Source of the DNA: Haliotis rubra
Lineage: Eukaryota
Length of the DNA: 64,000 nucleotides
Direction: 5' to 3'
NCBI RefSeq assembly: GCF_003918875.1
Contig: NW_025767346.1
Coordinates: forward strand, 248,001-312,000
Shown: positions 9,420 through 49,992 of the stretch, one piece after another
Layout of the letters: the number at the start of each line of letters is the position of its first letter
How positions within the stretch are numbered: position 1 is the stretch's first letter
Position numbers and translations under genes: made by a program
Notes under the pieces: model-generated
What the model was told of the DNA's origin: nothing
The model's input: the letters and a program-made list of their open reading frames with translations, nothing else
Databases searched by the model: none

Positions 9420-9741
9420 CTCCAAACCTCCAGAGACTCCGCACAGTGGTCACCCTGAGATCGCCAAGCCCCTTAGTGGGATCCTCCAAGATGACGTGCC
9501 GCTCATTGAAGTCGACAAAGACGAGGAAGACGCGCGATCCCGGCAGTTGTTTAATGTCTGCGTGGCACCGGATGACCCGAGTGTGGATGGTGGGACATGG
9601 TTGCTGCACAGACTCGAACACAGACCTGGTCTGATCGGCATGTTTCATCTCCGTCTCGGTATGGAAGGTCACAATACACAGGGAGTCCTCCATCGGCCCC
9701 GTCCACGACAGCTCGTACTTCTCCTCACGTCGGAAGCCCCT
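9420..9741 (-). CDS. 2-TM coiled-coil gene B, exon with the N-half of the alpha/beta (TIR-like pattern) domain
   Basis: ctgcAG acceptor (phase 0) and GGAG|GTGAGT donor (phase 1). Contains VFVDFNERHVILEDPTKGLGDLRVTTV, shared with 39609-39294. Confidence 0.85.
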
Positions 9742-12377: not shown

Positions 12378-12408
<31 letters not shown>

Positions 12409-17919: not shown

Positions 17920-18023
17920 ACTGGGAATCCCACAGGGAACTACATACTATATGACCTCTGACCCTGGCCCTGAAGCGAGCATCATGTAATCGTAATTTGA
18001 CCTAAATTCGAGTTCCAGGAAAC
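17920..18023. promoter_or_regulatory. Gene B / GTPase-1 intergenic module: kB site GGGAATCCC, TGACCTCTGACCC, TGACCTAA, GAS site TTCCAGGAA
   Basis: Motifs at 17923, 17952, 17998 and 18013. The kB-to-TGACC spacings of 29 and 75 nt are identical to gene A. Extra kB-like sites at 17272-17280 and 17289-17297. Confidence 0.6.
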
Positions 18024-19783: not shown

Positions 19784-19846
19784 CTACACCAGTCAGCCCT
19801 GCAAACCACACATTGCCTGACTTAAAGAGAGAAAACACCAGAAGTC

Positions 19847-20079
19847 ATGGACCATCAAAAGCGACGGCTTCAGGCGCAGATAAAGGACAATTTACAGAAG
19901 ATTGGACGGCGACTAAATGGACGACCTATGACTGTGGCTTTTATTGGAACCATTGGAGTTGGCAAGTCTTCCCTAATCAACACCATCGCGACGGCCATGG
20001 GCACCGGATTTTGGCAGCAACACGCTTACACTGGAGGCCACGGGGGTCAGGCTGACCCGGTCACGGCAGTCATCAGAAG
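19847..20079 (+). CDS. IFI44-like: IFI44-like GTPase 1, exon 1 (G1, G2). Model: 19847-20079, 20832-21166, 30148-30506 = 308 aa
   Basis: VAFIGTIGVGKSSLINTI Walker A; AG|GTACGG donor, phase 2. All three exons join in frame (927 nt). Confidence 0.85.
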
Positions 20080-20099
20080 GTACGGCTCTATAATATAAG

Positions 20100-20133
20100 G
20101 ATCATCATCATTGTCATCGTCACGATCACAATG

Positions 20134-20184
<51 letters not shown>

Positions 20185-20400
20185 ACATCAACGTCAACAC
20201 CACCACCCTCTACCTCGACCTCCCTCTTTTCATCATGATCATAATCGTCATCATCATGATCATCATCATCATCATCATGATCACGATCGCAATCCTCCAA
20301 CCCGATCTCCTCCTTTTCATCACCACCACCACAACCATCATCATCATCATCATCATCATCGTCATCATCATCATCATCATCTCCGTGATCGCAGTCCCTC
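20100..20400. repeat. (CAT)n microsatellite in GTPase-1 intron 1
   Basis: Read directly. Confidence 0.9.
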
Positions 20401-20831
20401 AACTCGTCTTTTAATCATCATCGCCACAACCATCATCTTAATCATATAAACCACAATTCTCCGCCACCATCATCATCAAGTCTGTAATGATCAACGCCAT
20501 CACAGTCATCACCATCAGCATCCGCAAAGTATGAGAGACTTTGTTCAGGAAGTGTATTATAATCACCAAACTCTCCAAAACATAATATGGTAACTTGTGT
20601 TGTATTTGTACAATCTCAAAGCTGCAAGTTAATTGCATCAGGTATAACATAATCATAGTTTATATCTGTTTCCCAATGAAAGCCGTTTAGTTACTCATAC
20701 GCTAAATCTCATGACGTAAAGACTAAGAGGATGTACATGTAATTTGAGTGTAAAAATAGCTAACCAGTTTTTATTGCAGTTTCCATTCATTATCATGCTT
20801 CTGTCGTGTTGTACCCTGTGTATGTCCGTAG

Positions 20832-21166
20832 ATATCCACAATGTTGCCGACCGGAAGAGCATCGTAACCAGCTCTTCCCAACTCTAATGGACGTCCAGGG
20901 ACTTCCGGATCATCCTGACGCCATCTGGCGGGAGGCTCTGTCCCTTTTGTTCTATGGGCATATTCCCGAGGAAGCAAACCTGCACGACGTGGTAGACTAC
21001 CTACAGGCCAGGGATGACATACGGCGTCCGAGGTACATTCGAGGTCGCGACCGCCTGAAGGTGGACCGGGTTGTCGTTGTTGCCTCTGCCCAGGAACATT
21101 TACCCAAGGGTCTGCTTGAATCTGTTGTTAAGATTGCCAGGCCTGTTAGCGGACGCAGTCGAAGAG
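20832..21166 (+). CDS. IFI44-like: IFI44-like GTPase 1, exon 2 (G3)
   Basis: gtAG acceptor. YPQCC...PTLMDVQGL...LLFYGHIPE...LKVDRVVVVASA. G|GTTAGT donor. Confidence 0.85.
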
Positions 21167-21199
21167 GTTAGTGGCATGTTTTCCTGTGGATGAAGAAAT

Positions 21200-24100
21200 G
21201 ACATTATATGTAGCAGGAATGACATTGGATGTAGTATGAATGACACTGGATGTAGTATGAATGACACTGGATGTAGTATGAATGACACCGGATGTAGCAG
21301 GAATGACACTGGATGTAGTATGAATGACACCGGATGTAGTATGAATGACACTGTATGTAGTATGAATGGCACTGGATGTAGTATGAATGACACTGGATGT
21401 AGCAGGAATGACACCGGATGTAGTATGAATGACACTGGATGTAGTATGAATGACACTGGATGTAGTATGAATGACACTGGATGTAGTATGAATCACACTG
21501 GATGTAGCATGAATGACACTGGATGTAGTATGAATGACACCGGGTGTAGTATGAATGACACTGGATGTAGTATGAATGACACCGGGTGTAGTATGAATCA
21601 CACTGGATGTAGCAGGAATGACACTGGATGTAGTATGAATCGCACTGGGTGTAGTATGAATGACACTGGATGTAGTAGGAATGACACTGGATGTAGTATG
21701 AATCACACTGGATGTAACATGAATGACACCGGGTGGAGTATGAATGACACTGGATGTAGTATGAATGACACTGGATGTAGTATGAATCACACTGGATGTA
21801 ACATGAATGACACCGGTGTAGTATGAATGACACTGGATGTAGTATGAATGACACTGGATGTAGTATGAATCACACCGGGTGTAGTATGAATCACACTGGA
21901 TGTAGCAGGAATGACACTGGATGTAGTATGAATCACACTGGATGTAACATGAATGACACTGGGTGTAGCATGAATGACACTGGATGTAGTATGAATCACA
22001 CCGGGTGTAGTATGAATCACACTGGATGTAGCAGGAATGACACTGGATGTAGTATGAATCACACTGGATGTAGTATGAATCACACTGGATGTAGTATGAA
22101 TCACACCGGGTGTAGTATGAATCACACTGGATGTAGTAGGAATGACACTGGATGTAGGATGAATCACACTGGCTGTAGCAGGAATGACACTGGGTGTAGC
22201 ATGAATGACACTGGATGTAGTATGAATCACACCGGGTGTAGTATGAATCACACTGGATGTAGCAGGAATGACACTGGATGTAGTATGAATCACACTGGAT
22301 GTAACATGAATGACACTGGATGTAGTATGAATCACACCGGGTGTAGTATGAATCACACTGGATGTAGCAGGAATGACACTGGATGTAACATGAATCACAC
22401 TGGATGTAGCAGGAATGACACTGGATGTAGTATGAATCACACTGGATGTAACATGAATGACACTGGATGTAGTATGAATCACACCGGGTGTAGTATGAAT
22501 GACACTGGATGTAGCAGGAATGACACTGGATGTAGTATGAATCACACTGGATGTAGCATGAATGACACTGGATGTAGTATGAATGACACCGGGTGGAGTA
22601 TGAATGACACTGGATGTAGTATGAATCACACCGGGTGTAGTATGAATCACACTGGATGTAGCAGGAATGACACTGGACGTAGTATGAATGACACTGGGTG
22701 TAGTATGAATGACACTGGACGTAGTATGAATGACACTGGGTGTAGTATGAATGACCCTGGATGTAGTATGAATGACACTGGATGTAGTATGAATGACACC
22801 GGGTGTAGTATGAATCACACAGGATGTAGCAGGAATGACACTGGATGTAGTATGAATCACACTGGATGTAGCAGGAATGACACTGGGTGTAGTATGAATG
22901 ACACTGGATGTAGTATGAATCACACCGGGTGTAGTATGAATCACACTGGATGTAGTATGAATGACACTGGACGTAGTATGAATGACACTGGGTGTAGTAT
23001 GAATCACACCGGGTGTAGTATGAATCACACTGGATGTAGCAGGAATGACACTGGACGTAGTATGAATGACACTGGGTGTAGTATGAATGACACTGGACGT
23101 AGTATGAATGACACTGGATGTAGTATGAATGACACTGGATGTAGTATGAATCACACTGGATGTAGCATGAATGACACTGGATGTAGTATGAATGACACCG
23201 GGTGTAGTATGAATGACACTGGATGTAGTATGAATGACACCGGGTGTAGTATGAATCACACTGGATGTAGCAGGAATGACACTGGATGTAGTATGAATCG
23301 CACTGGGTGTAGTATGAATGACACTGGATGTAGTAGGAATGACACTGGATGTAGTATGAATCACACTGGATGTAACATGAATGACACCGGGTGGAGTATG
23401 AATGACACTGGATGTAGTATGAATCACACTGGATGTAGTATGAATCACACTGGATGTAACATGAATGACACCGGGTGGAGTATGAATGACACTGGATGTA
23501 GTATGAATGACACTGGATGTAGTATGAATCACACCGGGTGTAGTATGAATCACACTGGATGTAGCAGGAATGACACTGGATGTAGTATGAATCACACTGG
23601 ATGTAACATGAATGACACTGGGTGTAGCATGAATGACACTGGATGTAGTATGAATCACACCGGGTGTAGTATGAATCACACTGGATGTAGCAGGAATGAC
23701 ACTGGATGTAGTATGAATCACACTGGATGTAGTATGAATCACACTGGATGTAGTATGAATCACACCGGGTGTAGTATGAATCACACTGGATGTAGTAGGA
23801 ATGACACTGGATGTAGGATGAATCACACTGGCTGTAGCAGGAATGACACTGGGTGTAGCATGAATGACACTGGATGTAGTATGAATCACACCGGGTGTAG
23901 TATGAATCACACTGGATGTAGCAGGAATGACACTGGATGTAGTATGAATCACACTAGATGTAACATGAATGACACTGGATGTAGTATGAATCACACCGGG
24001 TGTAGTATGAATCACACTGGATGTAGCAGGAATGACACTGGATGTAACATGAATCACACTGGATGTAGCAGGAATGACACTGGATGTAGTATGAATCACA

Positions 24101-27100
24101 CTGGATGTAACATGAATGACACTGGATGTAGTATGAATGACACCGGGTGTAGTATGAATGACACTGGATGTAGCAGGAATGACACTGGATGTAGTATGAA
24201 TCACACTGGATGTAGCATGAATGACACTGGATGTAGTATGAATGACACCGGGTGGAGTATGAATGACACTGGATGTAGTATGAATCACACCGGGTGTAGT
24301 ATGAATCACACTGGATGTAGCAGGAATGACACTGGACGTAGTATGAATGACACTGGGTGTAGTATGAATGACACTGGACGTAGTATGAATGACACTGGGT
24401 GTAGTATGAATGACCCTGGATGTAGTATGAATGACACTGGATGTAGTATGAATGACACCGGGTGTAGTATGAATCACACAGGATGTAGCAGGAATGACAC
24501 TGGATGTAGTATGAATCACACTGGATGTACCATGAATGACACTGGATGTAGTATGAATGACACCGGGTGTAGTATGAATGACACCGGGTGTAGTATGAAT
24601 CACACTGGATGTAGCAGGAATGACACTGGGTGTAGTATGAATGACACTGGATGTAGTATGAATCACACCGGGTGTAGTATGAATCACACTGGATGTAGTA
24701 TGAATGACACTGGACGTAGTATGAATGACACTGGGTGTAGTATGAATCACACCGGGTGTAGTATGAATCACACTGGATGTAGCAGGAATGACACTGGACG
24801 TAGTATGAATGACACTGGGTGTAGTATGAATGACACTGGACGTAGTATGAATGACACTGGGTGTAGTATGAATGACATTGGATGTAGCAGGAATGCCACT
24901 GGACGTAGTATGAATGACACTGGGTGTAGTATGAATGACACTGGATGTAGTATGAATGACACCGGGTGTAGCAGGAATGACACTGGACGTAGTATGAATG
25001 ACACTGGGTGTAGTATGAATGACACTGGACGTAGTATGAATGACACTGGGTGTAGTATGAATGACATTGGATGTAGCAGGAATGCCACTGGACGTAGTAT
25101 GAATGACACCGGGTGTAGTATGAATGACACTGGATGTAGAATGAATCACACCGGGTGTAGTATGAATGACACTGGATGTAGTATGAATCACACTGGATGT
25201 AGTATGAATCACACTGGATGTAGTATGAATCACACCGGGTGTAGTATGAATCACACTGGATGTAGCAGGAATGACACTGGACGTAGTATGAATGACACTG
25301 GGTGTAGTATGAATGACACTGGACGTAGTATGAATGACACTGGGTGTAGTATGAATCACACTGGATGTAGCAGGAATGACACTGGACGTAGTATGAATGA
25401 CACTGGATGTAGTATGAATGACACTGGACGTAGTATGAATGGCACTGCGTGTACTATGAATGAAACTGGATGTAGCAGGAATGACACTGGACGTAGTATG
25501 AATGACACTGGGTGTAGTATGAATGACACTGGACGTAGTATGAATGACACTGGGTGTAGTATGAATCACACTGGATGTAGCAGGAATGACACTGGACGTA
25601 GTATGAATGACACTGGATGTAGTATGAATGACACTGGACGTAGTATGAATGGCACTGGGTGTAGTATGAATGACACTGGATGTAGTATGAATGACACTGG
25701 ATGTAGTATGAATCACACCGGGTGTAGTATGAATCACACTGGTTGTAGCAGGTATGACACTAGATGTAGTATATGAATCACACTGGATATAGCATGAATG
25801 ACACTGGATGTAGTATGAATGACACTGGGTGTAGTATGAATGACACTGGACGTAGTATGAATGACACTGGATGTAGTATGAATGACACTGGACGTAGTAT
25901 GAATGACACTGGACGTAGTATGAATGGCACTGGGTGTAGTATGAATCACACCGGGTGTAGTATGAATCACACTGGTTGTAGCAGGTATGACACTGGATGT
26001 AGTATGAATCACACTGGATATAGCATGAATGACACTGGATGTAGTATGAATGACACTGGGTGTAGTATGAATGACACTGGACGTAGTATGAATGGCACTG
26101 GGTGTAGTATGAATGACACTGGATGTAGTATGAATGGCACTGGGTGTAGTATGAATGACACTGGATGTAGTATGAATGACACTGGATGTAGTATGAATCA
26201 CACCGGGTGTAGTATGAATCACACTGGTTGTAGCAGGTATGACACTGGATGTAGTATGAATCACACTGGATATAGCATGAATGACACTGGATGTAGTATG
26301 AATGACACTGGGTGTAGTATGAATGACACTGGACGTAGTATGAATGACACTGGACGTAGTATGAATGACACTGGATGTAGTATGAATGACACTGGACGTA
26401 GTATGAATGGCACTGGGTGTAGTATGAATGACACTGGATGTAGTATGAATGACACTGGATGTAGTATGAATCACACCGGGTGTAGTATGAATCACACTGG
26501 TTGTAGCAGGTATGACACTGGATGTAGTATGAATCACACTGGATATAGCATGAATGACACTGGATGTAGTATGAATGACACTGGGTGTAGTATGAATGAC
26601 ACTGGACGTAGTATGAATGGCACTGGGTGTAGTATGAATGGCACTGGGTGTAGTATGAATGACACTGGATGTAGTATTAATCACACCGGGTGTAGTATGA
26701 ATCACACTGGATGTAGCAGGAATGACACTGGACGTAGTATGAATGACACTGGGTGTAGTATGAATGACACTGGACGTAGTATGAATGACACTGGGTGTAC
26801 CATGAATGACACTGGATGTAGTATGAATGACACCGGGTGTAGTATGAATGACACTGGATGTAGTATGAATGACACTGGATGTAGTATGAATCACACCGGG
26901 TGTAGTATGAATCACACTGGATGTAGCAGGAATGACACTGGACGTAGTATGAATGACACTGGGTGTAGTATGAATGACACTGGACGTAGTATGAATGACA
27001 CTGGGTGTAGTATGAATCACACTGGATGTAGCAGGAATGACACTGGACGTAGTATGAATGACACTGGATGTAGTATGAATGACACTGGACGTAGTATGAA

Positions 27101-30075
27101 TGGCACTGGGTGTAGTATGAATGACACTGGATGTAGTATGAATGACACTGGATGTAGTATGAATCACACCGGGTGTAGTATGAATCACACTGGTTGTAGC
27201 AGGTATGACACTGGATGTAGTATGAATCACACTGGATATAGCATGAATGACACTGGATGTAGTATGAATGACACTGGGTGTAGTATGAATGACACTGGAC
27301 GTAGTATGAATGACACTGGATGTAGTATGAATGACACTGGACGTAGTATGAATGACACTGGACGTAGTATGAATGGCACTGGGTGTAGTATGAATGACAC
27401 TGGATGTAGTATGAATGACACTGGATGTAGTATGAATCACACCGGGTGTAGTATGAATCACACTGGTTGTAGCAGGTATGACACTGGATGTAGTATGAAT
27501 CACACTGGATATAGCATGAATGACACTGGATGTAGTATGAATGACACTGGGTGTAGTATGAATGACACTGGACGTAGTATGAATGGCACTGGGTGTAGTA
27601 TGAATGACACTGGACGTAGTATGAATGGCACTAGGTGTAGTATGAATGACACTGGATGTAGTATGAATGACACTGGACGTAGTATGAATGACACTGGACG
27701 TAGTATGAATGACACTGGATGTAGTATGAATGACACTGGACGTAGTATGAATGGCACTGGGTGTAGTATGAATGACACTGGATGTAGTATGAATCACACT
27801 GGATGTAGTATGAATCACACCGGGTGTAGTATGAATCACACTGGTTGTAGCAGGTATGACACTGGATGTAGTATGAATCACACTGGATATAGCATGAATG
27901 ACACTGGATGTAGTATGAATGACACTGGGTGTAGTATGAATGACACTGGACGTAGTATGAATGGCACTGGGTGTAGTATGAATGGCACTGGGTGTAGTAT
28001 GAATGACACTGGATGTAGTATTAATCACACCGGGTGTAGTATGAATCACACTGGATGTAGCAGGAATGACACTGGACGTTAGTATGAATGACACTGGGTG
28101 TAGTATGAATGACACTGGACGTAGTATGAATGACACTGGGTGTAGTATGAATGACCCTGGATGTAGTATGAATGACACTGGATGTAGTATGAATGACACT
28201 GGATGTAGTATGAATCACACCGGGTGTAGTATGAATCACACTGGTTGTAGCAGGTATGACACTGGATGTAGTATGAATCACACTGGATGTAGTATGAATG
28301 ACACCGGGTGTAGTATTAATCACACTAGATGTAGTATGAATCACACCGGGTGTAGTATGAATGACACTGAATGTAGCAGGAATGACTCTGGATGTAGTAT
28401 GAATGACACTTGGTGTAGTATGAATGACACTGGACGTAGTATGAATGACACCGGGTGTAGTATGAATCACACTGGATGTAGCAGGAATGACACTGGGTGT
28501 AGTATGAATGACACTGGATGTAGCAAGAATGACACTGGATTTAGTATGAATGACACTGGATGTAGCAAGAATGACACTGGATGTAGTATGAATGACACTG
28601 GACGTAGTATGAATGACACTGGATGTAGCAAGAATGACACTGGATGTAGTATGAATGACACTGGACGTAGTATGAATGACACTGGGTGTAGTATGAATGA
28701 CACTGGATGTAGTATGAATGACACTGGGTGTAGTATGAATGACACTGGATGTAGCAAGAATGACACTGGATGTAGTATGAATGACACTGGACGTAGTATG
28801 AATGACACTGGGTGTAGTATGAATGACACTGGATGTAGTATGAATGACACTGGGTGTAGTATGAATGACACTGGGTTTAGAATGAATGACACTGGACGTA
28901 GTATGAGATGTAGTATGAATGACACTGGATGTAGCAGGAATGACACTGGATGTAGCAGGAATGACACTGGGTGTAGTATGAATGACACTGGGTGTTGTAT
29001 GAATGACACTGGGTGTAGTATGAATGACACTAGGTGTATTTTGAATGACACTGAGTGTAGTATGAATGACATTGGGTGTAGTATGAATGACACTTGGTGT
29101 AGTATGAATGACACTGGGTGTAGTATGAATGACATTGGGTGTAGTATGAATGACACTGGGTGTAGTATGAATGACACTGGGTGTAGTATGAATGACACTA
29201 GGTGTATTTTGAATGACACTTGGTGTAGTATGAATGACACTGGGTGTAGTATAAATGACACTGGGTGTAGTATGAATGACACTGGGTGTAATATGAATGA
29301 CACTGTGTGTAGAATGAATGACACTAGGTGTATTTTGAATGACACTGGGTGTAGTATGAATGACACTGGGTGTAGTATGAATGACACTAGGTGTAGTATG
29401 AATGACACTGGGTGTAGTATGAATGACACTGGGTGTAGTATGAATGACACTGGGTGTAGTATGAATGACACTTGGTGTAGCAGGAATGACACTGGCAGTA
29501 GTATGAATGACACTGGATGTAGCAGGAATGACACTGGGTGTAGCATGAATCACACTGGGTGTAGTATGAATGACACTGGATGTAGCAGGAATGACACTGG
29601 ATGTAGTATGAATCACACTGGATATAGCATGAATCACACTGGATGTAGTATGAATCACACCGGGTGTAGTATGAATCACACTGGATGTAGCAGGAATGAC
29701 ACTGGGTGTAGTATGAATGACACTGGATGTAGTATGAATGACAGTTGGTGTAGTATGAATGACACTGGATGTAGCAAGAATGACACTGGATGTAGTATGA
29801 ATGACACTGGACGTAGTATGAATGACACTGGGTGTAGTATGAATGACACTGGATGTAGTATGAATGACACTGGGTGTAGTAGGAATGACACTGGGTGTAG
29901 AATGAATGACACTGGACGTAGTATGAGATGTAGTATGAATGAAACTGGATGTAGCAGGAATGAAACTGGATGTAGCAGGAATGACACTGGGTGCTGTATG
30001 AATGACGCTGGATGTACTAGGAAAAACACTGAATGTTGTATGAATGACACGATATTTAGCAGTAATGACACATCC
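21200..30075. repeat. About 8.9-kb array of a 21-bp unit (GTAGTATGAATGACACTGGAT)n occupying GTPase-1 intron 2
   Basis: More than 400 tandem units; source of the 700-1300-aa pseudo-ORFs. Confidence 0.95.
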
Positions 30076-30147: not shown

Positions 30148-30506
30148 GCATTCCCATATTTGGAATCATGACAAAGACTGATCTCGTAGACCCTGATGTC
30201 GACCTCGACTACCTGCAGAGGGAGGAGAAGTTCAAAGATATCTTAGGTCTACATGGCACGCCACGCTTCCTCCGATGCATCAACTACTGCAGCGCCATCG
30301 ACCCCGACAACAACATGATCTTCACCAGCTACCCATACATCGACGTCCCAGTACTTCGTCTTATGACCCAGATCTGTGACCCAGCCATAGAAGTAGTTCA
30401 TCAGCAGGAACCCTACCCCTACCGGCAGCTAGCCAGGGAAAAGACCTGCTGGATCGTGATGGCTATCGTTGTAATCTTTCTGGCGTTTGTATTTATTTTA
30501 CGTTGA
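30148..30506 (+). CDS. IFI44-like: IFI44-like GTPase 1, exon 3 (G4, NY motif, C-terminal tail anchor)
   Basis: acAG acceptor, phase 1. GIPIFGIMTKTD...RFLRCINY...IDVPVLRLMTQI...WIVMAIVVIFLAFVFILR*. Confidence 0.85.
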
Positions 30507-34579: not shown

Positions 34580-36044
34580 TAGGGCTTCAACGAGTCCATT
34601 TTCTTGGACTCGAGTACTCGAGGTGTGAGACTCGACTCGGACCCGAGTACTCGAAATTCATACCTTTCAAACAAACGATAGCGTAACCGGCATGACATGT
34701 GTTCCGATCACACAAGTGAACACTTACTTCTTTTCGATTTCATATCGTCGTGTGATTAACATTTCCTATTGGTCAGAATCAGTATTTGGATGTTTACTTG
34801 CCAAATGTTGCTTTTTTCATCGTACTGGTTGTACTGCCTGCATAAGGCGGTGGCATTTGGTTATTTTTCTCTTTTCAATATTATCCAGATCAAGACACGC
34901 CCATACATTTGATTTTTTATCGTTCTCCATGTCTGTTAAGATAGTTACCTAATCATTTTAAGAAGTGAAATCTCAAACGATGTATAATAATTACTCTCAT
35001 CTGCAGACTTGTAACAACTAATACCATACAGCCATACCGTGTGAGGAGTAAACTATTTAATCTAGGTGTTAATAAAAACATTATCAGATGGGTTAAAGAA
35101 TTCATGGTACATAGAACTCAGTATGTCAGTGTCAGTGGCTATCAATCTTCTTTCCTCTCAGCCTCTACTGGAGCTCCACAGGACTGTGTTCTTTCATCCG
35201 TACTCTTCGTTTTGTATACCAATGCCTGTTACTTGTCATTAAATGACTTGTTTACTGTGAAATTCGCAGATGACGCCACTGTTACTGGCCTAATTTCTGA
35301 TTCTGAACCTTATTATCGTCAAGGCATTGACAAAACCGTAATGACAGTTTTTATCAAACCTTTATTCAAAGTGTGTTGACATACAATTTTCTATGTTGGT
35401 ATGGGGTCTGTCTGATCGCAACAAAAACAAACTTTTCAAAATTGTTAATACTGCCGGCAAAAGTTCGAGTATATTCCTTTTATCTATGAGCGCCAGATTG
35501 TCAAAAAGGCAACTAAAATTAGATTTGATAGTTAACATATTTTATCTCACCATTTTGAAGTACTGCTTTCTGGACGCTGCTGTCGATTACCTTCCCTCAA
35601 AACAAACAGAGCTCGACAGTCTTTCATACCATTAAATATTCGTGAACGCAACAAATATTTTGAATTATCACCATGTGATAACAACTAGAATTATTCAGCC
35701 TCTGTACCTATGTGGTTAATTGAATTATATCATGTCAGTTTTATTGTGTAAATAGCTTTCGTTTTGTGCATGTAATTATTGTGTATATTTTTGTGAATTG
35801 TGTACATATTCATTTTGAGACAGTTTGGATGTATAAGAATTTCCTCCGGGATAATAAAGTTATATCTTATCTTAATATTAGACGTTAACGGCCGCTCATG
35901 CTCAGCACATGGCAGACAGTCTGTCAAAGTAACCCAACAATTCGAGCTATCTCCCCTTTTCGAGTCCTCGAGTCCTAGAAAATGGACTCGAGTCCAGCTA
36001 AACCCGACTCGTCTTCGAGTACTCGAGTACCCGTGGAAGCCCTA
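34580..36044. mobile_element. Non-autonomous hAT-type element (8-bp TSD) with a nested LINE fragment
   Basis: TAGGGCTTC...GAAGCCCTA ends, subterminal CTCGAGTACTCGAG repeats, TSD ATGTTGAG on both sides. Confidence 0.8.
35000..35875 (+). mobile_element. Degraded Rex1/Babar-like LINE reverse-transcriptase fragment
   Basis: WVKEFMVHRTQYVSV...STGAPQDCVLSSVLFVLYTN...KFADDATVTGLI; ends in an AATAAAGTTATATCTTATCTT tail. Confidence 0.75.
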
Positions 36045-38648
36045 ATGTTGAGCACAACCAACCTAACCATGTCGAAGGCTATTCATATAGATCACAGAGG
36101 TCGATAATCGTTAACTATATATCGATCGAATATAGGTAAATATCGAAGAAGTAACTTTGAGAAAATATGCCAAAAATTGTCTCAAAGAAATGAATATGTT
36201 TCACATCACTGATGAGTGGTGACATATTTTTGCATGGATTATTAACAAACAGCAACATAATTTGAAGAGGATAATTTCAAAGCAGACCATGAATAAAGTC
36301 CAAAATTTGTATATTGTTTTTTTCTACCATAAAAGTTAATGTACGATATTATCGATAACACAATCGATGCCTAGGTGTCGATTAACGATTGACGCCGCTC
36401 TGGGCGAGAATGTGAATTGTGCCAAAACGAAAGCCAGACTTGACAAAACGGAAGCACAGTCCTGGAGAATCTTGGATTCTAATCCACGATCATAGGCGCC
36501 TTAAGCCCAAATGGACGCAACTCCGCCGCAATAACAGCAGCTGTGCTCACCGAGCCACAACCTCCGTTCTCCCCTCACAACAACAACAACAACACAAGCA
36601 TAGGTTGTTGAAGACCAATTCTAATAGGGACCTTCACGGGTCCCAGGAGTATGAGGAGAGGTGGAGGTTTCCAATGTTCAGTACATAAATATAGTATGTG
36701 TGTGTGTATTTTGCCACAATACCGTATGGAATTGCCAGCTCTGTTGAGCATTCCACGAGACTTTCCTACTGTGACGTCATATACAAAACACAGAACCCGT
36801 GAAGATCCTGGTTAGAATTGGTCTTCGGTAACCCGTGCTTGTCGAAAGAAGTGACTAACGGGATCGGGTGGCCAGGTTCGCTGACTTGGTTAACACATGT
36901 CATCGTATCCAAATGGCGTTGATTGATGCTCACGATGTAGATCACTGGATTGTCTGGTCCAGACTTGATTATTTACGCATTTACAGATGGCTGCCACATA
37001 GTTTGATTATTGGTGTGCGGCGTTAAACAATAAACACCGTGTGCATGAGATACAATATCGATTTAATATGAGCTATATAGCAATTCAAAGCATCAACAAT
37101 TTGTTTCAAAGTCAAAACTGTCCCTGCTGTGATCAGCTGTATTCCTGTGGTAAACATTTCACTAAGGGGAGGCAACTCCGTTACCATTTCGGAAATTAAT
37201 TTATGGCGTTGAATACGCATGGAGAATGCAGGGTGACGTTAGACTACTGGAGATATCGCCCGGTCTGACATTTCCACACGGGGTGGGTTCGTTTAAACGC
37301 GACAGGGGCAGAAGAGATCTAAAAAATGACCCCTTTGATAAAATCAAGGAAGACGGCAACCCTTGTGATCATAACGGGGAATATAGTGGATTCAAGCCAA
37401 CAATAAGCGGATCATGACTGAACGAAGGTACGTAACTCTACTCATCACTGTGGAAACCTTAGATATCTGAGTGACGCTGCTCAAAGAGGGTTCTTTGTAA
37501 TTACGAGGAGTCATTAATTATTAATGCGTATAGTCGCATTCCCACTGTATTTGTAGATAAAGACTGACTGACTGAGTTTGGTTTTTACGCCGCTTTTAGC
37601 AATATTCCAGCAACATCACGGCGGGGGGAACACCAGAAATGGGCTTCACACATTGTACCCATGTGGGGATTTGAACCCGGGTCTTCGGTGTGACGAGCCA
37701 ACGCTTTAACCACTAGACTACCCCACCGCCCCTGTAGATAAAGAGATAGTTATGGCTCAATCCCTCTTTGGACAGTAGGAACGGTGGGGTAGTCCAGTGG
37801 TTAAAGCGTTCGGTCACCACGCTGAAGACCCGGGTTCGATTCCCAACACGGGTACATTTCTGGTGTTGCTCGCCGTGATATTGCTAACAGCGGCGTAAAA
37901 CCATACTCACTCACTCTCGACAGTCTTCCCAGGAATTATAAATACATTATCAAACCTCCACTATCCAATATACCATGTCTCCAATCTACAATGATGAATA
38001 CCCTGTACATTCGACTTCAATGTCGTCGTTGTGGAAGTGACGTACCATCTCTAATAACTCCACGTGCGTAATTTGATAGCATTGCTCCGAATAGGGTTGA
38101 GAAGGAACGTAGATTAGGGAACCGAGTCGGGGTTATTATTGCAACAGTGTGGCAATATAATACCCTGGACATTGCTATCCTATCCACTGCTCCGGAAAAG
38201 CATTATGACAAATTGCTCAAAACGGCGGCCCATAAACCTATATGTTATATCTGGACATATTATCCGATAAAAGCGCTTACGCCCCCTTTCCAGTTAGACA
38301 ACGCTGTCTTTTATTCACCAGTCAGCGGATAATCCGCTTAATCTAATGCCAATAATGATGATTATTGCACAGTCGGTGTGTCTCATTAAAAGCTCACTCA
38401 CAGCCATTAAATACACTGAAAGGTTCTAATTCAAGTGCTTTAAGACATATAGTTCATTACATCTCAAGGGAGGTACACAAACTGGTCCCTCCGCGGCGAT
38501 TATCACGTGATAGGTCCTTTAGTGGTCGGTCCTTAGCTAGGAAGGACTTAGTATCTGGTCTTCGCTTTTTCCTGATCCGTAACTTCCTGGAGTCAAGGTT
38601 TTTGCAATCTTCCTTTATTATGGACCACACAGACACCAGAAAAACCTG

Positions 38649-38854
38649 TTATATTCTATGTTCTTTTACGATCTTCACAATTCGATCAATTTGTGACTGG
38701 TTGAATTTCTCAAACACGCTGAGCATGCGTTGGTCGTTGTCAAGGCGACGGAGTTCGGGATGATTCCTGATCGAGGTCAAGTTGCTGTTGTATAAAGTCC
38801 CGGGTGGCAGGGACCTCGAGCCGCCATCTCTGCTATATATTACTACGACATCAC
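38649..38854 (-). CDS. 2-TM gene C, exon 5 (C-half of the alpha/beta domain)
   Basis: tttcAG acceptor, phase 1. (G)DVVVIYSRDGGSRSLPPGTLYNSNLTSIRNHPELRRLDNDQRMLSVFEKFNQSQIDRIVKIVKEHRI*. Confidence 0.85.
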
Positions 38855-39293
38855 CTGAAACATAATCAAAAAATCCAGGGATTAGGAAGGGACAAAACTC
38901 TGCACAGCAACTTTCAGCTGCAAAATGACGAGTCACCATAAATATTCTATTCAAATTCATAATCGTCAGAGTGCGTGAGTTTTATTTTTACGTCACTTAT
39001 AGCAATATTCCAGCAATATCACGGCGGGGAACACCAGAAATGGGCCGCACACAAAACCATGTGGAGAATCGAACCCGGGTCTTCAGCGCGAACGCTTTAA
39101 CCACTAGACTACACCCACCGCTCCAGTAGTTAAGAAGGGCCTTACCGTTACGACAATCGTGTCTCCCATAGGTAACTAACTTAACTCACTCCTTCACATA
39201 CTCTTATCATCCGTATGTTTTCGTTACCAAATGAGAAACCATTTATTTTGGTCTAACAATGTTTGTAGTGGATTACAACAACAGTGTTCTCAC

Positions 39294-39609
39294 CTCCCAT
39301 TTTGCGGATAGCTTGTACTGTTGTAAGCCTGAGATCCCCCAGTCCTTTCGTGGGGTCCTCGAGGATGACATGCCTCTCGTTGAAATCCACAAACAGAAAG
39401 TAGACTTTACAAGGTGGAAGCCTTAAAATAAGCTCGTGCCCTTTGACGCAGTGCTTCGTGACAGTAATGTGTCTGGTGGCATCGTTCTGTGATAGGACAG
39501 CATCGACTTGGGTGTGGTGTTGGTTGATGGTGTCTGAATGGAAGCTGACCACACAAACACGGTTCTCAAGATGGCGGGGTGAAACGCTGTTCAAAATATT
39601 CTCGTCTCC
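39294..39609 (-). CDS. 2-TM gene C, exon 4 (N-half of the alpha/beta domain)
   Basis: ttctAG acceptor (phase 0) and GGAG|GTGAG donor. RVCVVSFH...KVYFLFVDFNERHVILEDPTKGLGDLRLTTV. Confidence 0.85.
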
Positions 39610-40928
39610 CTAGAAATACATCTTTTTGTTATGGGCTGTACCAAAATTAGAGTGAGTGAGTTTAGTTTTTAGCAATACCCCTGCAACGACGGAGGACACC
39701 AGACATGGGCTTCACAAATCGTGTCCACGTGGGGAATCGAACTCAGGTCTTTGGCGTGGCGAGCGAACGCATTAACCACTAGGCTACCCTTCCGCCCTGA
39801 ACCAAGACGTATTACTAGCAGCTCCAAATTAATGACCAATATAAATATATTTGGACGCGTCACTTTAGATCGCGCCCAAACCAGATTGAGCAGTGAGAAA
39901 GATTATAATGCAAATGATTGAGAATTGCTCCCCTTGAAACTTTTACGTCAAACCGTACATCACCCACGACACAGATGATTACGTTGAAACCGAGTAGTTA
40001 GTTTACAATTCAATTACCTATCGTTTGACACAAAACTGTTTGCACGCCATGGGCTAAAATTCGTGTGGACCTCAATTCGGGATTCCCAGTACATTAAGGT
40101 GTTTGGGGCTGGGCTTCTAGGGATCCCCAACCTTCACGTTGTTTCCAAAACCTATCTCGTTGCGTTTATTCTGTCCTTCAGCATATTGGCTGTATTATAA
40201 ACTGACTTATGAAGGAAAGTACACCACTAGTATTTAGGGAATATTTAAGAAAATACGGCGCAAAATATTTTGAGTTTAGTTTTACGTCGCACTCACCAAT
40301 ATTACAGCTATATGGAGGCGGTCTGTAAATAATCGAGTCTGGACCAGACAATCCAGTGATCAACAGCATAAACATCGATCTGCACAATGGCAGAACCGAT
40401 GACATGTGTCAACCAAGTCAGCGAGCCTGGCCACCCGATCACGTTAGACGCCTCTTACGACAAGCATGGGTTACTGAAGGAGCATTCACGGGTCCAAACT
40501 ATTTTGGACCGTGCTTTAGCGAGGAACATGAGGCGCTGGCAACCCTGCATATGGGTACGATATCCGTGATGTTTAAGCAACAGGCTCACAATGCCTGTGA
40601 TTCGTAAATCCCAAAGAAAACACGTTTCAAAATATTCTCATTTCTAATGGAAAATATTCCCAAAGCGTCAGGTGTTTATTTTCTTTTGTAAGTCAGGTTA
40701 TGGTCTTCTTTATAGTGAGTGAGTATGGTTTTACGCCGCTTTTAGCAATATTCCAGCAATATCACGGCGGGGGGACACTAGCAATAAGCTTCACACATTG
40801 TACCCATGTTGGGAATCGAGCCCAGATCATAGGCGTGACGATCGAACGCTCTAACCACTAGGCTACCCCGCCGCCCTTCTTCTTTATAAAAGCCGTATAT
40901 TTTCTGTTCTGTCTCAAACAAGGCATAC

Positions 40929-41104
40929 CCGAATGACGTCGTTATTAAGGCGTGGTTCCCCATTGGGGAGGCCTCGCCTTGCCCCTCCCCCTGGGCGCTC
41001 CCGCATGGTGGCTAGCACGTCAGTGAAGCTGGTCCACATCTTCCACACAGCAGCCATTGCCGCGATCTCTAGTATCCCCATCAACAAGATGAGGAAAATC
41101 CATT
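40929..41104 (-). CDS. 2-TM gene C, exon 3 (second TM helix)
   Basis: ttccAG acceptor (phase 1) and CGG|GTATGC donor (phase 0). (E)WIFLILLMGILEIAAMAAVWKMWTSFTDVLATMRERPGGG... Confidence 0.8.
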
Positions 41105-41602
41105 CTGGAACAGAATGTACACTTTTACAGTGAGTGAGCGAGTTTAGTTTTACGCCGCTTGTATCAGTATCCCAGTAATATCAAGGCGGCGGACACCAAA
41201 AATGGGCTTCACACATTGTACCAATGTGAGGAATCGAACCCGGGTCTTCAGCGTGACGAGTGGACGCTTTAACCACTAGGCTACCCCACCGCCGAGGTAC
41301 CCGACAGCCCCCCATCGCGTTTTAAGCCAATAAGGATGGGGAACGCGAAGTGATGAAGGTCTGACACGTTTACCATTCCTTGAAACAGGCACTGCTAAAA
41401 AAACGAGAAGCACAATCAAAGCCAAGATCACAGGTTTCTGGTACATCTAAGGGACATAACTCTGTATAACCGTAAAACAGCTGGACCTTTAGAATGGACC
41501 ACAAAATAAGAACTCTCGATTCTTAATTTTACTCAAGTTATTCTTTTCAGGACGTGCACCATAGCTTGCGAAGATTTAAAACATATACATGTATGTACCT
41601 AC

Positions 41603-41910
41603 CCTTAGACAAAAACTTGTTGGTGAGTTCTTCCATGCGACCGTCGAGGATGTAGCTTTTCAGTTCAACGTTGGAGTAGTTGCTGTACATGTCATCACGC
41701 ATAATCGTGATGTTGGCCTCTAACCACTTAATCTTTTCATTGTCTGCGACATTCTGCTTCAAGCACTGGTCCAGTGTCGTGGTCATTGTGTTCACCTGCT
41801 GATGCAGTGTGGTAGATGACGAGGTGTAGTCGTTGCTGTTCCTGACGTTCACAAAGGCGGGGGCAAAATACAGGGTGCCGAGTGTTCCCAAAATGCCGCC
41901 TGCTAATCCT
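41603..41910 (-). CDS. 2-TM gene C, exon 2 (end of TM1 + short coiled coil)
   Basis: ttttAG acceptor (phase 2) and AAGG|GTAGGT donor (phase 1). GLAGGILGTLGTLYFAPAFV...LDQCLKQNVADNEKIKWLEANI... Confidence 0.8.
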
Positions 41911-44640: not shown

Positions 44641-45335
44641 GTGGCTGTAGACATTGCACATATGAAAAATAAGGGATCCTGTAAAACACGTTGGAACTTT
44701 GGCTGGTGGTTAGCTTGTAGCGCGTCAGTTCCGGGGATATCAGCCGCAGGATCTCTCTTGGTCACTGTAGTCTCTCTGTCAGGCGGTGCCCAATCTGGCT
44801 TTGCGTGTGTTTGTGATCCCTTAGTGCCGGGGGTATCTGCTGAAGTTTCTCTGTTGGTCACTGTGGTCTCTCTGTCAAGCGTTGTCGAATCTTGCTCTGC
44901 CTGTATTTGTGATCCCTTGCCTCCGTGTGTATGTGCCACAGGATCGCCGTTGGTCACTGTGGTCTCTCTGTCAAGCGTTGTCGTATCTTGCTCTGCGTGT
45001 ATTTGTGATCCCTTGCCTCCGTGTGTCTGTGCCACAGGAGGCCGTGCCGGATCTGGCTTTGCGTGTGTTACTGACCCTTCAGTAATGGAAGGCTCTGCGC
45101 CAGAGGACGCGTTTGCTTCTGTCCTCTCCTCACAGATACACTTGCTCGTCGTTTTGTCTTCTCGTAACCCTGTCTCTTTCAAATCGGCCGTTGCGTTACC
45201 GCCCGATGTATATTTATGCCCGACAACGTTTGTCTCCCTTTCATTTCCAGCCAGACCTCCAGTTAGGGTTGATTCATGTCCCGAACTTACTTCGCCTGTC
45301 ATCAGTGACGAGTTGTCCTGGTCCCTAGACGCCAT
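44641..45335 (-). CDS. 2-TM gene C, exon 1 (repetitive T/E/D-rich cytoplasmic tail). Model: 45335-44641, 41910-41603, 41104-40929, 39609-39294, 38854-38649 = 566 aa
   Basis: ATG at 45335; AC|GTAAGT donor, phase 2. All five exons join in frame (1701 nt). Confidence 0.8.
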
Positions 45336-45686
45336 TCAAGCGTGGAATAGACGTGGTTGTAAGAGCTGGCGACAAGTCGTCATTCGGAGTGCACTTCATA
45401 TGCTGATAGTTGTTATTCACTCTGTTTAACATGAATATTGTTCCACCCAGGCAATGACCAATGTCCAACCACCTGCTTCTCGCCCTCTCCAAGTGACATG
45501 GACTGCTCACGGAACTATTTCGCCTTCTCCCTGAAGAAATATATACGTAATGCTTGATCGGGTCCACTTCAATACATCCCCGCTCAGTCGTTAGTTAGAT
45601 TTCCAGGGCGAGAGGACAATGTATTTGTGTCTCCACGTTCTGTTTACTCACTGCGCAATAACATAAACCAGTCTCAAAGGTCAACC

Positions 45687-45760
45687 TGACCTAAACATCG
45701 CTTCCAAGAAACAAACGACACGCCTGCTGTAGAGGCAGTCTGGGATCCTGGGGATTCCCC
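45687..45760. promoter_or_regulatory. Gene C / GTPase-2 intergenic module: TGACCTAA, GAS site TTCCAAGAA, kB site GGGGATTCCCC
   Basis: Motifs at 45687, 45702 and 45750. TGACCTAA-to-GAS spacing is 15 nt, as upstream of gene B. Confidence 0.55.
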
Positions 45761-46355
45761 GAAATCCGCCTCACATATCAATCCCAACGCGTAAATAAAT
45801 AGTCCTTAATGCATCGTATCTCTTTGTTGTTAACATGCGATTTTAACCAACAGCATACCGCTTGCATATAAAATGAGTGTCATACGTTACAATATCATGC
45901 TGACATGATGAACATATATTGTTGAATCCGTATCGATCGAACGAACTGTTGTCGGCAACCGTGGCGGAGGAATATGTTGTTAAAAATAACCACACGTAAA
46001 GTTGAGCTCGGCGTAAGGATAAGAGGGCCTCGCCACAACAACACGACATATTTGTCTCGGAGGGGCTGAGAAGGCTGGACTTGAGGTAGGTGTAAGCAGA
46101 TTTATGTATTGTACACATTCTACACATACTGACATGATTTCATAGGGCTGTAGCGTGTATTATAACATGCCAGTCTCAATTTCTTGGCCTGAATATGTTA
46201 ACAAGTCACAGCCAGGAATGCGATTGAGCATGACAGTCTTCAGACTGTGACAGGGTGACCCTTGATACAACAGTTTTGTGTTTCAGTCTGAGCGAGCAAG
46301 TATGGTTTTGCGCCGCTTTTAGCAATACTCCAGCAATATCACGGCCGGCGACACC

Positions 46356-46526
46356 NNNNNNNNNNNNNNNNNNNNNNNNNNNNNNNNNNNNNNNNNNNNN
46401 NNNNNNNNNNNNNNNNNNNNNNNNNNNNNNNNNNNNNNNNNNNNNNNNNNNNNNNNNNNNNNNNNNNNNNNNNNNNNNNNNNNNNNNNNNNNNNNNNNNN
46501 NNNNNNNNNNNNNNNNNNNNNNNNNN
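46356..46526. other. Assembly gap (N run)
   Basis: Ns in the sequence. Confidence 1.
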
Positions 46527-48526
46527 TACCAGTTCCACAGAAATGAGGTATAGTGGTTAAAACGTTCGTTCGTCACTCCGAAGACCCGGGTTCGATTCTC
46601 CACATGTGGACAATGCGTGAAGCCCATTTCCGGTGTCCCCCCGCCGTGACATTGTTGGAATATTGCTAAAAGCAGCGTAGAACTTAACTCACTCACTCAA
46701 ATGATGATAATAACACTCGTGACAATGCCAATGACGATGACGAATCGGAACCTCGAAAACAACAACCTTTGTTTTTAATGTGGACCCAAATAATCTGAAC
46801 ATCATGGGGCTGAAATATATATTTTTGCTGAAATGTTAGCGATTTGAGTCACTGAATGCTTTTCGCGGTTGTCAAGTAGACCATAAACGTAGCATCATTT
46901 TAGGTTTAGTCTTTAGTTCACAACCCTTTCGTTAGCCCCCCGAGGCCATTGTAACCATAGCGACCGGGAATAGTTGAGCTTAGTCAAGGTTCATAAATAG
47001 TTTAGCTGAACAGACTGTATATGAAGGACCGTCGGAATATGTGTATATTTCAAAATAATCGTTTTCTTCACTTAGCTGCGTTGTTTTGAACCTGGTCGGA
47101 AGTATGTGACGTCACTACTATTGTGAGGTGAGGTGAAATTGGGTTTTACGTCGTGCTTGAGAATATTTCGCTCATATGACGACGTGCATGCGTGTGTATG
47201 TGTATGTGCGGCTGCTTGCACTAGCCCAGACTTAAGCTGATTTTATAGTGCTAGCCCACTGAGATACCATGCCGCAGTGAAGCATGAATACCCCACTCAG
47301 ACACATTATACTGACTCCGAACCGACCAGTCCTTGTTGTACCCATTAATGCGCCAAGCAGGGACCAACAAGTACCATATTTTAACGTCTTTTGGTATGAC
47401 GCGGTCGGGGATCGAACCCGCGACCTTCCGCTCTCCGGGCAGACGCTCTAACCACTACGATTCCCGACAGGGGTACAATGTTTGAAACCCATTTCTGGTG
47501 TTCCCCGCCGTGGTATTGTTGGAAAACAGCTAAAAGCGGCGTAACAAGACTTCACTCACTCATGTAATATTTCTGCCTGGCTAGACTATAAAATTCCGAA
47601 ACAGACTATAACCCAATACCCTATTGTATAGGAGATTTGCCACGTCAGATCATGAGTGATGTCTACATCTGGACAGTAGAGACTGTCTGAATGACATATA
47701 TCGTCTCGCACCTCGAGCTCAGTGTCGCAGTTAATGCAGCTGCGATCATGGTAAACACTGAAAGCCTTACTATTGGCTAATCCGTGATTTCCGAGAAAGG
47801 TCTGGTCACATGATATGCAAATCAATCCATGGCAGTGATACAGAGTAAAATCATCACTGTGACGTAATGTGTAGTAATATCTAGTTCGGGATGTACATTA
47901 GAGTGAGTGAGTTTAGTTTTACGCCGCTTCCAGTAATATTCGTGCAATATCCCTAGGTATGAGGGACACCAGAAATGGGCTTCACGCATTGCACTCATGT
48001 GGGGAATCGAACCCGGGTATTCGGCGTGACGAGCGAACTCTTTAACCACTAGACTACCCCCAGCGCCCTCTGTACATAAAAACAACTTTTTAATAAACAG
48101 TGCTATCTTCAACAAGCGAGTAGTAAATGTTATCTGGCAAACGAACGTAATCACAATGAATTCACAGTCTGGAGATTCTCACCGTAAAGCTGAAAGTCAT
48201 TCGAGATATGTTGACACTGTTTTCTACGTATATTACTCAGACTACACACATATAGGTTTGGATTTACGCCAGAAGTTCCCGTTCCTGTTCGGTTTACTGA
48301 AACTCGCTGCGTAGTTTGTTTTCTAAGGTTTAATAATAATACATTTGTTACGACACTCTGTTGATTTAGCACTCCATTATTGCTAAAGTAATGTAGAGTA
48401 TTTATTATAATTCTTTTTCTCGCCATTTGTTTACATTGCTTTAACCATAATTATATTTTTCACCAAACATTGCCACGCGGTTAAGGCATACTAGTCAAGG
48501 CTATCTATAGTATACTAATGATAAAG

Positions 48527-48862
48527 ACCGCCTCCGTGGTGTAGTGGTTAGAGCGTCCGCCCGGAGAGTGGAAGATCGCGGGTTCGATCCTTGACCGCGT
48601 CATACCTAAAAGACGTTAAAATATGGTACTTGTTTGTCCCTGCCTGGCGCTCGGCATTAATGCGTACAACAAGGACTGGTCGGCTCGGAGTCGGTATTTA
48701 TGCTTCATGGTATCTCAGTGGGCTAGCACTATAAAACCAGCTTAAGTCTAGGCTAGTACAAGCAGCCGCACATGCACATACACATGCATGCACGTCGTCA
48801 TATGAGCGAAATATTCTCAAGCACGACGTAAAACCCAATTTCACCTCACCTCACCTCACCTC
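48527..48862 (+). mobile_element. tRNA-derived SINE family 3 (about 335 bp, (CCTCA)n tail) with a 13-bp TSD
   Basis: Box A/B head, core GTCATACC.AAAGACGTTAAAATATGG, TSD ACTAATGATAAAG. Other copies at 47123-47458 (-) and about 58233-58589 (+). Confidence 0.85.
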
Positions 48863-49802
48863 ACTAATGATAAAGTCTTTATCTTTCCAGTTACCATTGT
48901 CCTTACTTTCAATTGAGTATCAGATTCACTTTTAACAACATTAAATATAGGTTCAATCTTAATTACATCTAATTTACATAGAATTTAGCTATAGTGAAGC
49001 CACAGTTGACAGGATTTGGTTCAAGTACCTGATTACTCAAAACACAAACCGAAAAATGCCAAACATGCTCCTGGTGTTTATAATTGTTTGTTTGTTTGTT
49101 TATTAAGATCACACTCAGCAATATTCCATAGATATAGGTCGTTTAGCCCAAGTTGTTTACAATTCTCGTCCTATGGGGGCGGTGGGGTAGCCTAGTGGTT
49201 AAAGCGTTGGCTCGTCACGCCGAAGACCCGGGTTCGAATCCCCACATGGGTACAATGTGTGAAGCCCATTTCTGGTGTCCCCCGCCGTGATGTTGCTGGA
49301 ATATTGCTAAAAGCGGCGTAAAACTAAACTCAGTCAGTCTCGTCCTATGACGTGTGACGAGTGAATTGGTTTTACGCCCCATTTACAATAACCTAACAAT
49401 ATCACGGCGGGGCACACCAGAAATTGGATTCACACATTGAACCCATGTGGGAAATCGAACCGGGCCATTGGCATGACGAGCGAACGCTTTAACCACTAGG
49501 CTACCCTACTGCCCCCTCGACCTAACAATACGCCCAAAATGTAAAACCTGAAAAACAGTGTCATGTATATCTACGCTTTTTTTAACCTTGTTATGATTTT
49601 TCCCTTGTCGATGATATTTTGTTATGTAGTGTAAATAATACTATATATAGGTAAATGCAAATCATTATTTGAACCCGTATCGAAATAAGTAAATTACATA
49701 AAATAAATGAAGACAAAATTATTGTTTCAAAAGACAGTGACGTGAATGAAGGACGTACAATAAGTGTAGCAGGAACTTTCAATGTATATTTCAGAATTCC
49801 AA

Positions 49803-49992
49803 ATGGATGACATTGATCGCGAATCCTTCTCCGTCTTGAGCCAAGACTCGGACGCCGAGACGGACATCCAGGAAGGGGACTGGACGCCAGACTTCCAGAA
49901 AAACCAGAAGAGATTGAGCCTCATCAGGAGGATACGGAAACATTGTGGAAAGGATGACGGCATCACCAAGCCTCTCAATGTTGTAGTTATAG
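49803..49992 (+). CDS. IFI44-like: IFI44-like GTPase 2, exon 1. Model: 49803-49992, 50773-50905, 51832-52172, 52888-53618 = 464 aa
   Basis: tttcAG acceptor ending at 49794; ATG at 49803; ...KPLNVVVIG|GTCAGT, phase 1. The exons join in frame (1395 nt). Confidence 0.8.

Follow-up and report, generated by a model that had tools for sequence, protein, structure and literature searches.

The analysed stretch of DNA (the window) comprises 64,000 nucleotides of Haliotis rubra (contig NW_025767346.1, positions 248,001 to 312,000 of the forward strand) and contains three tandem copies, A, B and C, of a gene family whose products carry a previously unnamed α/β domain of ~165 residues. The window has a guanine-plus-cytosine content of 43% and, in keeping with eukaryotic DNA, contains introns and high-copy repeats. 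The domain of A lies beyond the start of the window, and those of B and C are each divided between two exons (Table 1). The first domain exon of either gene encodes ~105 residues, the first two-thirds of the domain; in gene C, it contains a juxtamembrane linker, strands 1–3, a conserved loop and helix 3. The exon borders are canonical in B and C, with cag or tag acceptors, G/gtgag donors and phase 1. The first domain exon of gene B is 87–88% identical to the Haliotis proteins P0001–P0003, and the spliced product across the last two exons of gene B contains WRFGADVTVIYCGD, matching P0002. The last exon of gene C is 79% identical to P0012 by tblastn. In gene C, one public transcriptome record joins segments 38600-38850, 39290-39610, 40931-41104 and 41603-41767, and the last four exons are therefore transcribed and spliced as modelled; the joint 38850/39290 is ambiguous by 4 nucleotides through a shared TCAC. 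The transcript support derives from assembled contigs for gene C only and speaks of presence and splicing, not of expression level.

Table 1. Members of the domain family in the window and their parts (positions in the window; a slash within letters marks a splice junction)
Feature	Position	Strand	Basis
Gene copy A	5537-210	-	tblastn
Exon of neighbouring paralogue	2371-3609		99.8% identical to Haliotis rubra XP_046546719
Gene B, last exon of domain and stop codon	8786..9033	-	acceptor tttcag/CCGAC, phase 1
Gene B, first exon of domain	9420..9741	-	open reading frame, splice sites cag/ and G/gtgagt
Gene B, 22-residue block	9454..9519	-	coordinates and codons compared
Gene B, exon of second transmembrane helix	13885..13956	-	tblastn with P0002 residues 553-576, 79% identity
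Gene B, coiled-coil exon	16705-15029	-	tblastn with database relatives
Gene C, last exon, strand 4 to helix 5 and stop codon	38649..38854	-	acceptor tttcag/GTGAT, phase 1
Gene C, intron dividing the domain	38855..39293	-	skipped in RNA contigs
Gene C, first exon of C-terminal α/β domain	39294..39609	-	open reading frame, translation, splice sites tag/ and G/gtgag, spliced contigs
Gene C, 22-residue block	39328..39393	-	coordinates and codons compared
Gene C, exon of second transmembrane helix and basic juxtamembrane stretch	40929..41105	-	tblastn with P0012 residues 244-302; RNA contigs 40931-41104
Gene C, exon of first transmembrane helix and short coiled coil	41603..41910	-	tblastn with P0012 residues 137-243, 70% identity; RNA contigs 41603-41910
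Gene C, further exon	44837-44640	-	tblastn with database relatives

The two domain exons share a block of 22 residues, FVDFNERHVILEDPTKGLGDLR, which is common to the translations of 9421-9741 (minus strand, gene B) and 39295-39609 (minus strand, gene C). Within the block, 12 of the 22 codons differ between B and C, by 13 nucleotides in all, and no amino acid is changed. The Nei-Gojobori proportions of synonymous (pS) and non-synonymous (pN) differences are 0.82 and 0.02, respectively; the small pN arises because TTG and CTC are two steps apart and the paths between them are averaged. The remainder of the domain (136 aligned codons) exhibits a pS of 0.855, a pN of 0.44 and an amino-acid identity of 37.5%; against this background, a run of 22 identical residues at any place in the domain would arise by chance with a probability of ~6e-8. 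Because the synonymous sites are saturated in the block and the rest of the domain alike, the identity of the block in B and C is a result of long-standing protein-level constraint and not of recent gene conversion. An earlier, sequence-only reading had described an identical block with 12 synonymous codon differences, more diverged flanks and purifying selection on the block, and the translations and codon comparison bear out all three. Its label 'invariant' is too strong, as the block varies among homologues, even inside Haliotis, where other copies contain NERN, NQRN or VCVDFNERN.

A HMMER search of 1.84 billion representative sequences with the gene B exon retrieved 72 proteins at E<1e-3, and a profile search for short or foreign-phylum members added a few more proteins, from molluscs only. 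All family members checked with a species name (~30) are molluscs and belong to bivalves, Haliotis and Gigantopelta. The named genera are Haliotis, Gigantopelta, Solemya, Potamilus, Sinanodonta, Pecten, Mizuhopecten, Ylistrum, Mytilus, Mactra, Mercenaria, Ruditapes, Mya, Crassostrea/Magallana and Saccostrea. Echinoderm and cnidarian clusters from a language-model search scored below 0.9 and were not confirmed as members. The members are annotated as uncharacterized or misnamed as myosin-, titin- or paramyosin-like proteins. Pfam scans of the exon pieces, 50 domains and 51 full-length proteins returned only coiled-coil noise, plus Ig and FN3 domains in two Mercenaria members, and literature searches by locus names and topic yielded nothing on the loci or on a domain of this kind. 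In a maximum-likelihood tree, C clusters with P0012 of H. cracherodii and P0010 of Gigantopelta (support 98/92), and B is placed within a Haliotis-only clade (support 100/100); Haliotis and Gigantopelta therefore separated after the duplication that gave rise to B and C. We conclude that a mollusc-restricted, previously unnamed domain family with a TIR-like fold is real. Whereas the class of fold is familiar, neither the family nor its signature or protein architecture has been described previously.

The family proteins begin with an N-terminal tail, which varies, and continue with a transmembrane helix, a coiled coil of 55–750 residues and a second transmembrane helix; the ~165-residue domain closes the chain in nearly all full-length members. 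The density of N-glycosylation sequons in the coiled coil is 4.5 times that in the domain (2.04 and 0.45 per 100 residues, respectively), and basic residues are more numerous before the first transmembrane helix than after it. These two features of the sequences suggest that the coiled coil is extracellular or lumenal and that the α/β domain is cytosolic. At the level of the whole protein, this layout is analogous to that of tetherin/BST2, whose extracellular, glycosylated coiled coil is likewise anchored in the membrane at both ends; the second anchor of the mollusc proteins differs in being a transmembrane helix followed by a folded, putatively cytosolic domain, and the sequences are unrelated.

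Conservation was derived from an alignment of 50 domains (alignment A1) and is numbered according to P0002:602-787. No other contiguous stretch is as well conserved across the family as the block region. Position 77 is acidic in all members (D 68%, E 32%) and is followed by F78 (80%), N79 (66%, otherwise S or T), E80 (80%), R81 (84%), position 82 (N 52%, H 40%), I84 (96%), E86 (98%), P88 (88%), G93 (96%), D94 (86%) and T99 (92%). Beyond the block, conservation is observed at C22 (86%), S25, F26 (98%), H34 (86%), P67 (92%), Y114 (100%), D117 (88%), S120 (90%), L123, L127, Y128, N129, L141 (100%), L144, R149 (88%), S152 (92%) and Q161 (100%). The near-invariant residues are thus I84, E86, G93 and T99 in the block region and Y114 and Q161 outside it, and the family signature reads C.ISF, H, P, [DE]F[NS]ER.[VI]I[LI]E.P..GLGD...T, Y..D.GS..L...LYN, L..L, R..S, Q. 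The motif as a whole is kept in homologues from other species, which the sequence-only reading had set as a test. The loop surface positions T89 and K90 are variable in the family and identical in all Haliotis copies, which hints at a shared lineage-specific partner.

The structure of the domain was predicted with AlphaFold2 from two inputs, A1 headed by the B-type P0002:602-787 and A3 with the C-type P0012:300-470. The modelled proteins are the nearest database relatives of the abalone genes (P0002, 90% identical to B; P0012, 78% identical to C). Both models are confident, with a predicted local distance difference test score (pLDDT) of 89.6 and a predicted template modelling score (pTM) of 0.86 for P0002 and values of 94.7 and 0.91, respectively, for P0012, and exhibit identical topology. 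The predicted sheet is five-stranded and all parallel, and the elements are ordered β1-α1-β2-α2-β3-loop-α3-β4-α4-β5-α5. In the P0002 model, strand 1 (residues 18–25) and helix 1 (28–40) lead to strand 2 (51–56), a short helix 2 (60–65) and strand 3 (69–77), and an ordered loop (78–94) connects strand 3 to helix 3 (95–106). Strand 4 (109–115) is followed by a long connection to helix 4 (134–146), and the domain ends with strand 5 (150–153) and helix 5 (159–174). The block begins three residues before the end of strand 3, takes in all 17 residues of the ordered loop and extends two residues into helix 3. The loop was predicted with confidence (10-residue means of 81–98 across both models). The five strands are those assigned to the models by the dictionary of secondary structure of proteins (DSSP), and they coincide with the five segments proposed earlier as strands from the letters (CIVTFH, TRVIR, VFLVFVD, VTVIYC and RILSI).

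The predicted fold has the five-stranded parallel sheet and the helix order of a TIR domain and is superposable on solved TIR structures. Foldseek searches of the PDB returned marginal matches (E 5e-4 to 1e-2; template modelling scores of 0.4–0.5) that include EngB, flavodoxin and flavodiiron flavodoxin domains, a GH3 C-terminal domain, IRGQ, CENP-M, GIMAP2 and the RPS4, RRS1 and L6 TIR domains. Structural match scores were 10.4 for Bms1, 9.6 and 10.0 for the RRS1 TIR domain (130/141 residues, root-mean-square deviation 3.4), 9.9 for IRGQ, 9.8 for EngA, 8.9 for CENP-M, 8.4–8.8 for CheY-like receivers and 8–9 for the TIR domains of TIRAP, IL-1RAcPb, SARM1, TRIF, SIGIRR, STING-TIR and Cat1. In the ESM Atlas, the nearest named shapes beyond the family's own mollusc cluster are bacterial TIR_2/ThsB_TIR, TLR13, DUF4062 and response regulators. 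GTPase, pseudo-GTPase, CheY receiver and flavodoxin domains therefore match as well as TIR domains, and the fold match is not TIR-specific. The TIR/flavodoxin-like fold suggested by the sequence-only reading was right in shape, as judged by the AlphaFold2 models and the structural matches, but is not specific to TIR domains and has no counterpart at the level of sequence matches.

Profile comparisons failed to place the domain in any known family. Pfam TIR, TIR_2, SEFIR and related models gave no match up to E=10 with the exon pieces and up to E=1 with the 50 domains, and neither NCBIfam nor PADLOC, the latter of which contains ThsB and TIR models, gave a TIR-type match. Weak, scattered CARF matches in the same NCBIfam/PADLOC scan (three members, E 1.5e-3) were treated as noise. 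No PDB sequence was found up to E=10 by hmmsearch with the family profile. The TIR comparators were the annotated TIR NADase TcpC (where NAD is nicotinamide adenine dinucleotide) of Escherichia coli CFT073, a second CFT073 TIR protein and a 120-sequence TcpC-like alignment, which represent one narrow bacterial TIR subfamily; hhalign of A1 against the three gave probabilities of 0.1–1.4%. The WxxxE motif, which includes the catalytic glutamate, is present in 120/120 TcpC-like TIR domains and in 0/52 family members. Regular-expression scans for the Walker A motif GxxxxGK[ST] and for NKxD were likewise negative (0/52 each), as was a scan for the flavin mononucleotide (FMN) phosphate loop of flavodoxins, [ST]x[ST]GxT, after strand 1 (0/52). 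Pfam Flavodoxin had no match among the 50 domains, and Pfam Response_reg had none. The uniformly negative sequence tests are the reason why the domain is not filed as a TIR, GTPase, receiver or flavodoxin domain.

The domain differs from each of its structural neighbours in distinct features. Compared with the TIR domains of the STIR clan (RRS1/RPS4, TIRAP, IL-1RAcPb, SARM1 and TIR_2/ThsB), it displays no similarity in hidden Markov model (HMM) or profile-profile comparison and lacks WxxxE. Moreover, its strand 3 and helix 3 are joined by an ordered loop of 17 residues that has a signature of its own, NER.VILE.P..GLGD, and the family is mollusc-restricted. Unlike CheY-like receivers, the domain has no conserved DD pair after strand 1 and no conserved lysine after strand 5, and aspartate and glutamate interchange at its strand 3. 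The FMN loop distinguishes flavodoxins from it. Two plant TIR boxes resemble family motifs (SFRGEDTR..F..HL for ISF.EET...H..L and PIFY.VDPS.VR.Q.G.F for VIY.RD.GS..L..G.LY), and the resemblances were taken as leads and not as tests. In E. coli CFT073, tcpC, a second TIR-domain gene and a macro-domain gene are located side by side in the serU island (L002:7764-10301).

In doubly wound α/β folds, binding and catalytic sites are located at the C-terminal ends of the strands, especially at the chain crossover, which we take to lie between strands 1 and 3 in this domain. The conserved polar and aromatic residues of the family occupy such positions: F26 follows strand 1; D/E77–R81, E86 and D94 follow strand 3; Y114, D117 and S120 are found at strand 4 or beyond it; S152 is part of strand 5; and Q161 lies at the start of helix 5. 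Because these residues sit at the strand C-terminal ends, the block would form the main wall of a single functional crevice atop the sheet, a reading of the models to which we assign a probability of roughly 0.55. The domain would then act as a cytosolic signalling output module of receptor-like membrane proteins, and the crevice would serve this output by binding a small ligand, perhaps a nucleotide, or as the docking place of a conserved cytosolic partner, as in TIR domains. The number of polar residues that are conserved speaks equally for a small-ligand or catalytic site and for a protein interface. The loop after strand 3, which the sequence-only reading had singled out as an active site or a nucleotide-binding or partner surface, is retained as the candidate site, since it belongs to the most conserved stretch and starts at the C-terminal end of strand 3. 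The particular D, N, E, R and H residues named there, however, turned out to be the variable part of the block, with D, N and H under the least constraint.

Several observations weigh against the crevice and the output role. The D, N, E, R and H residues are replaceable in apparently intact relatives, which contain, for example, EFSERH, DFNQRN or DSNKQN. No HMM or profile ties the domain to TIR or any other family, and the TIR catalytic signature WxxxE is absent throughout (52/52 members). The clustering of the conserved residues in one pocket is deduced from their secondary-structure positions in the models. The simple receptor picture is complicated by two Mercenaria mercenaria members, P0053 (XP_053372560) and P0056 (XP_053372610), which contain three to four Ig I-set domains N-terminal of the first transmembrane helix and no signal peptide; P0056 also has three FN3 domains there. 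Because two transmembrane helices lie in between, these Ig and FN3 domains are on the same membrane side as the α/β domain.

Two other accounts of the domain were weighed, and both appear unlikely. In the first, the domain is a degenerate G domain (pseudo-GTPase) without a P-loop that pairs with a true GTPase, such as the membrane-anchored IFI44-like GTPases encoded next to B and C, and the conserved block is a protein-protein interface and not a ligand site. The high match scores of Bms1, IRGQ, EngA and CENP-M are compatible with this account, but the Walker A and NKxD motifs and any G1–G5 motif are missing, and only two residues connect strand 1 to helix 1 in both models. In the models, moreover, a helix intervenes between strands 2 and 3 of the all-parallel five-stranded sheet, and the antiparallel strand 2-3 hairpin of the G domain, a fold of six strands of which one is antiparallel, appears to be missing. 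On the G fold, the block, the most conserved segment of the family, would presumably map to the strand 4-helix 3 region, where no nucleotide role or switch element is known. Moreover, in Gigantopelta and Solemya no IFI44-like sequence was found closer than 10 kb to the family genes.

The second account regards the domain as a true, highly diverged TIR domain that cleaves NAD, with E86 as the catalytic glutamate, and carries similarly low odds. TIR domains are the top or tied-top structural matches of both models, as exemplified by the RRS1 match, which spans almost all of the TIR chain. E86 (98%) lies in the strand 3-helix 3 connection, where TIR NADases carry their catalytic glutamate, and P67 (92%) lies between strands 2 and 3, in the counterpart of the BB loop. 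Nevertheless, E86 is positioned in an extended loop, nine residues past the strand, and not in a helix in the P0002 model, and the negative Pfam results, the hhalign probabilities of about 1% and the distribution of WxxxE described above disfavour the account. NAD cleavage by the domain is accordingly treated as speculation, improbable in view of the sequence tests that speak against it. Descent of the domain from TIR, considered apart from activity, is a tentative proposition with better prospects, although it has no sequence support. A DNA-level cause of the block identity (recent gene conversion, or else overlap with a regulatory or RNA element) was weighed solely since B and C are tandem paralogues of one cluster, found nothing in its favour and is rejected as extremely improbable, given that the block is as synonymously diverged as its flanks and that the same peptide motif is kept in bivalves and other gastropods.

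The more specific form of the crevice reading concerns immunity. Molluscs, including farmed abalone, oysters, mussels and clams, possess innate immunity alone, and many of their expanded lineage-specific receptor families are without a known output domain. The domain delimited here has ~165 residues, no Pfam entry, a confident model and a clear signature, and it is found at the putatively cytosolic end of fast-evolving membrane proteins with a coiled coil, whose tandemly duplicated genes adjoin IFI44-like genes in abalone. It is conceivable, but quite doubtful, that the family is a new mollusc-specific branch of TIR-like immune effectors in which a nucleotide is bound or converted in the crevice upon clustering of the coiled coils, for example by a virus or microbe; the domain may in that case act together with the head-to-head IFI44-like GTPases. 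Such an effector would constitute a new invertebrate innate-immune signalling module. Should the domain function in signalling or nucleotide processing, it would represent a new branch of the TIR-like toolkit in animal immunity, and E86, Y114 and Q161 would provide a direct handle on it. If it is a docking module only, its definition is still useful for annotating hundreds of uncharacterized and myosin-, titin- and paramyosin-like mollusc proteins.

The introns of gene C contain very high-copy repeats (38942-39169, 39626-39853, 40196-40537, 40652-40879 and 41108-41335) with summed contig depths of 10^3–10^6, compared with ~15 on the exons. The first of these, at ~38942-39169 in the intron that divides the domain, reaches a summed contig depth of ~24,000 versus ~14 on the exons. 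Several of the repeats hold transfer RNA (tRNA)-like stretches of the GGTTCGAATCC type, which suggests that they are tRNA-derived short interspersed nuclear elements; ARAGORN called no tRNA in them. Between genes B and C, a plus-strand open reading frame at 35041-35379 contains the reverse-transcriptase-like motif FADDATVTGLI and is probably a fragment of a non-long-terminal-repeat retrotransposon. The large intron of gene B includes a long low-complexity, microsatellite-like stretch (10431-13484) with T/S/Y-rich open reading frames in all frames, and an assembly gap (N run, 9780-9910) is located just upstream of the gene B domain exon. A giant minisatellite at 21197-29926 comprises 416 copies of the 21-nucleotide unit AATGACACTGGATGTAGTATG (86% match) and yields long artefactual open reading frames on both strands. 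It is flanked by plus-strand open reading frames at 20806-21171 and 30168-30506, which look like parts of an IFI44-like GTPase gene (exons), and the minisatellite is therefore probably intronic. Genes B and C, both on the minus strand, are each arranged head-to-head with a plus-strand IFI44-like GTPase gene ~4 kb apart (16738-20806 and 45335-49803), and the pairs look like a duplicated two-gene unit.
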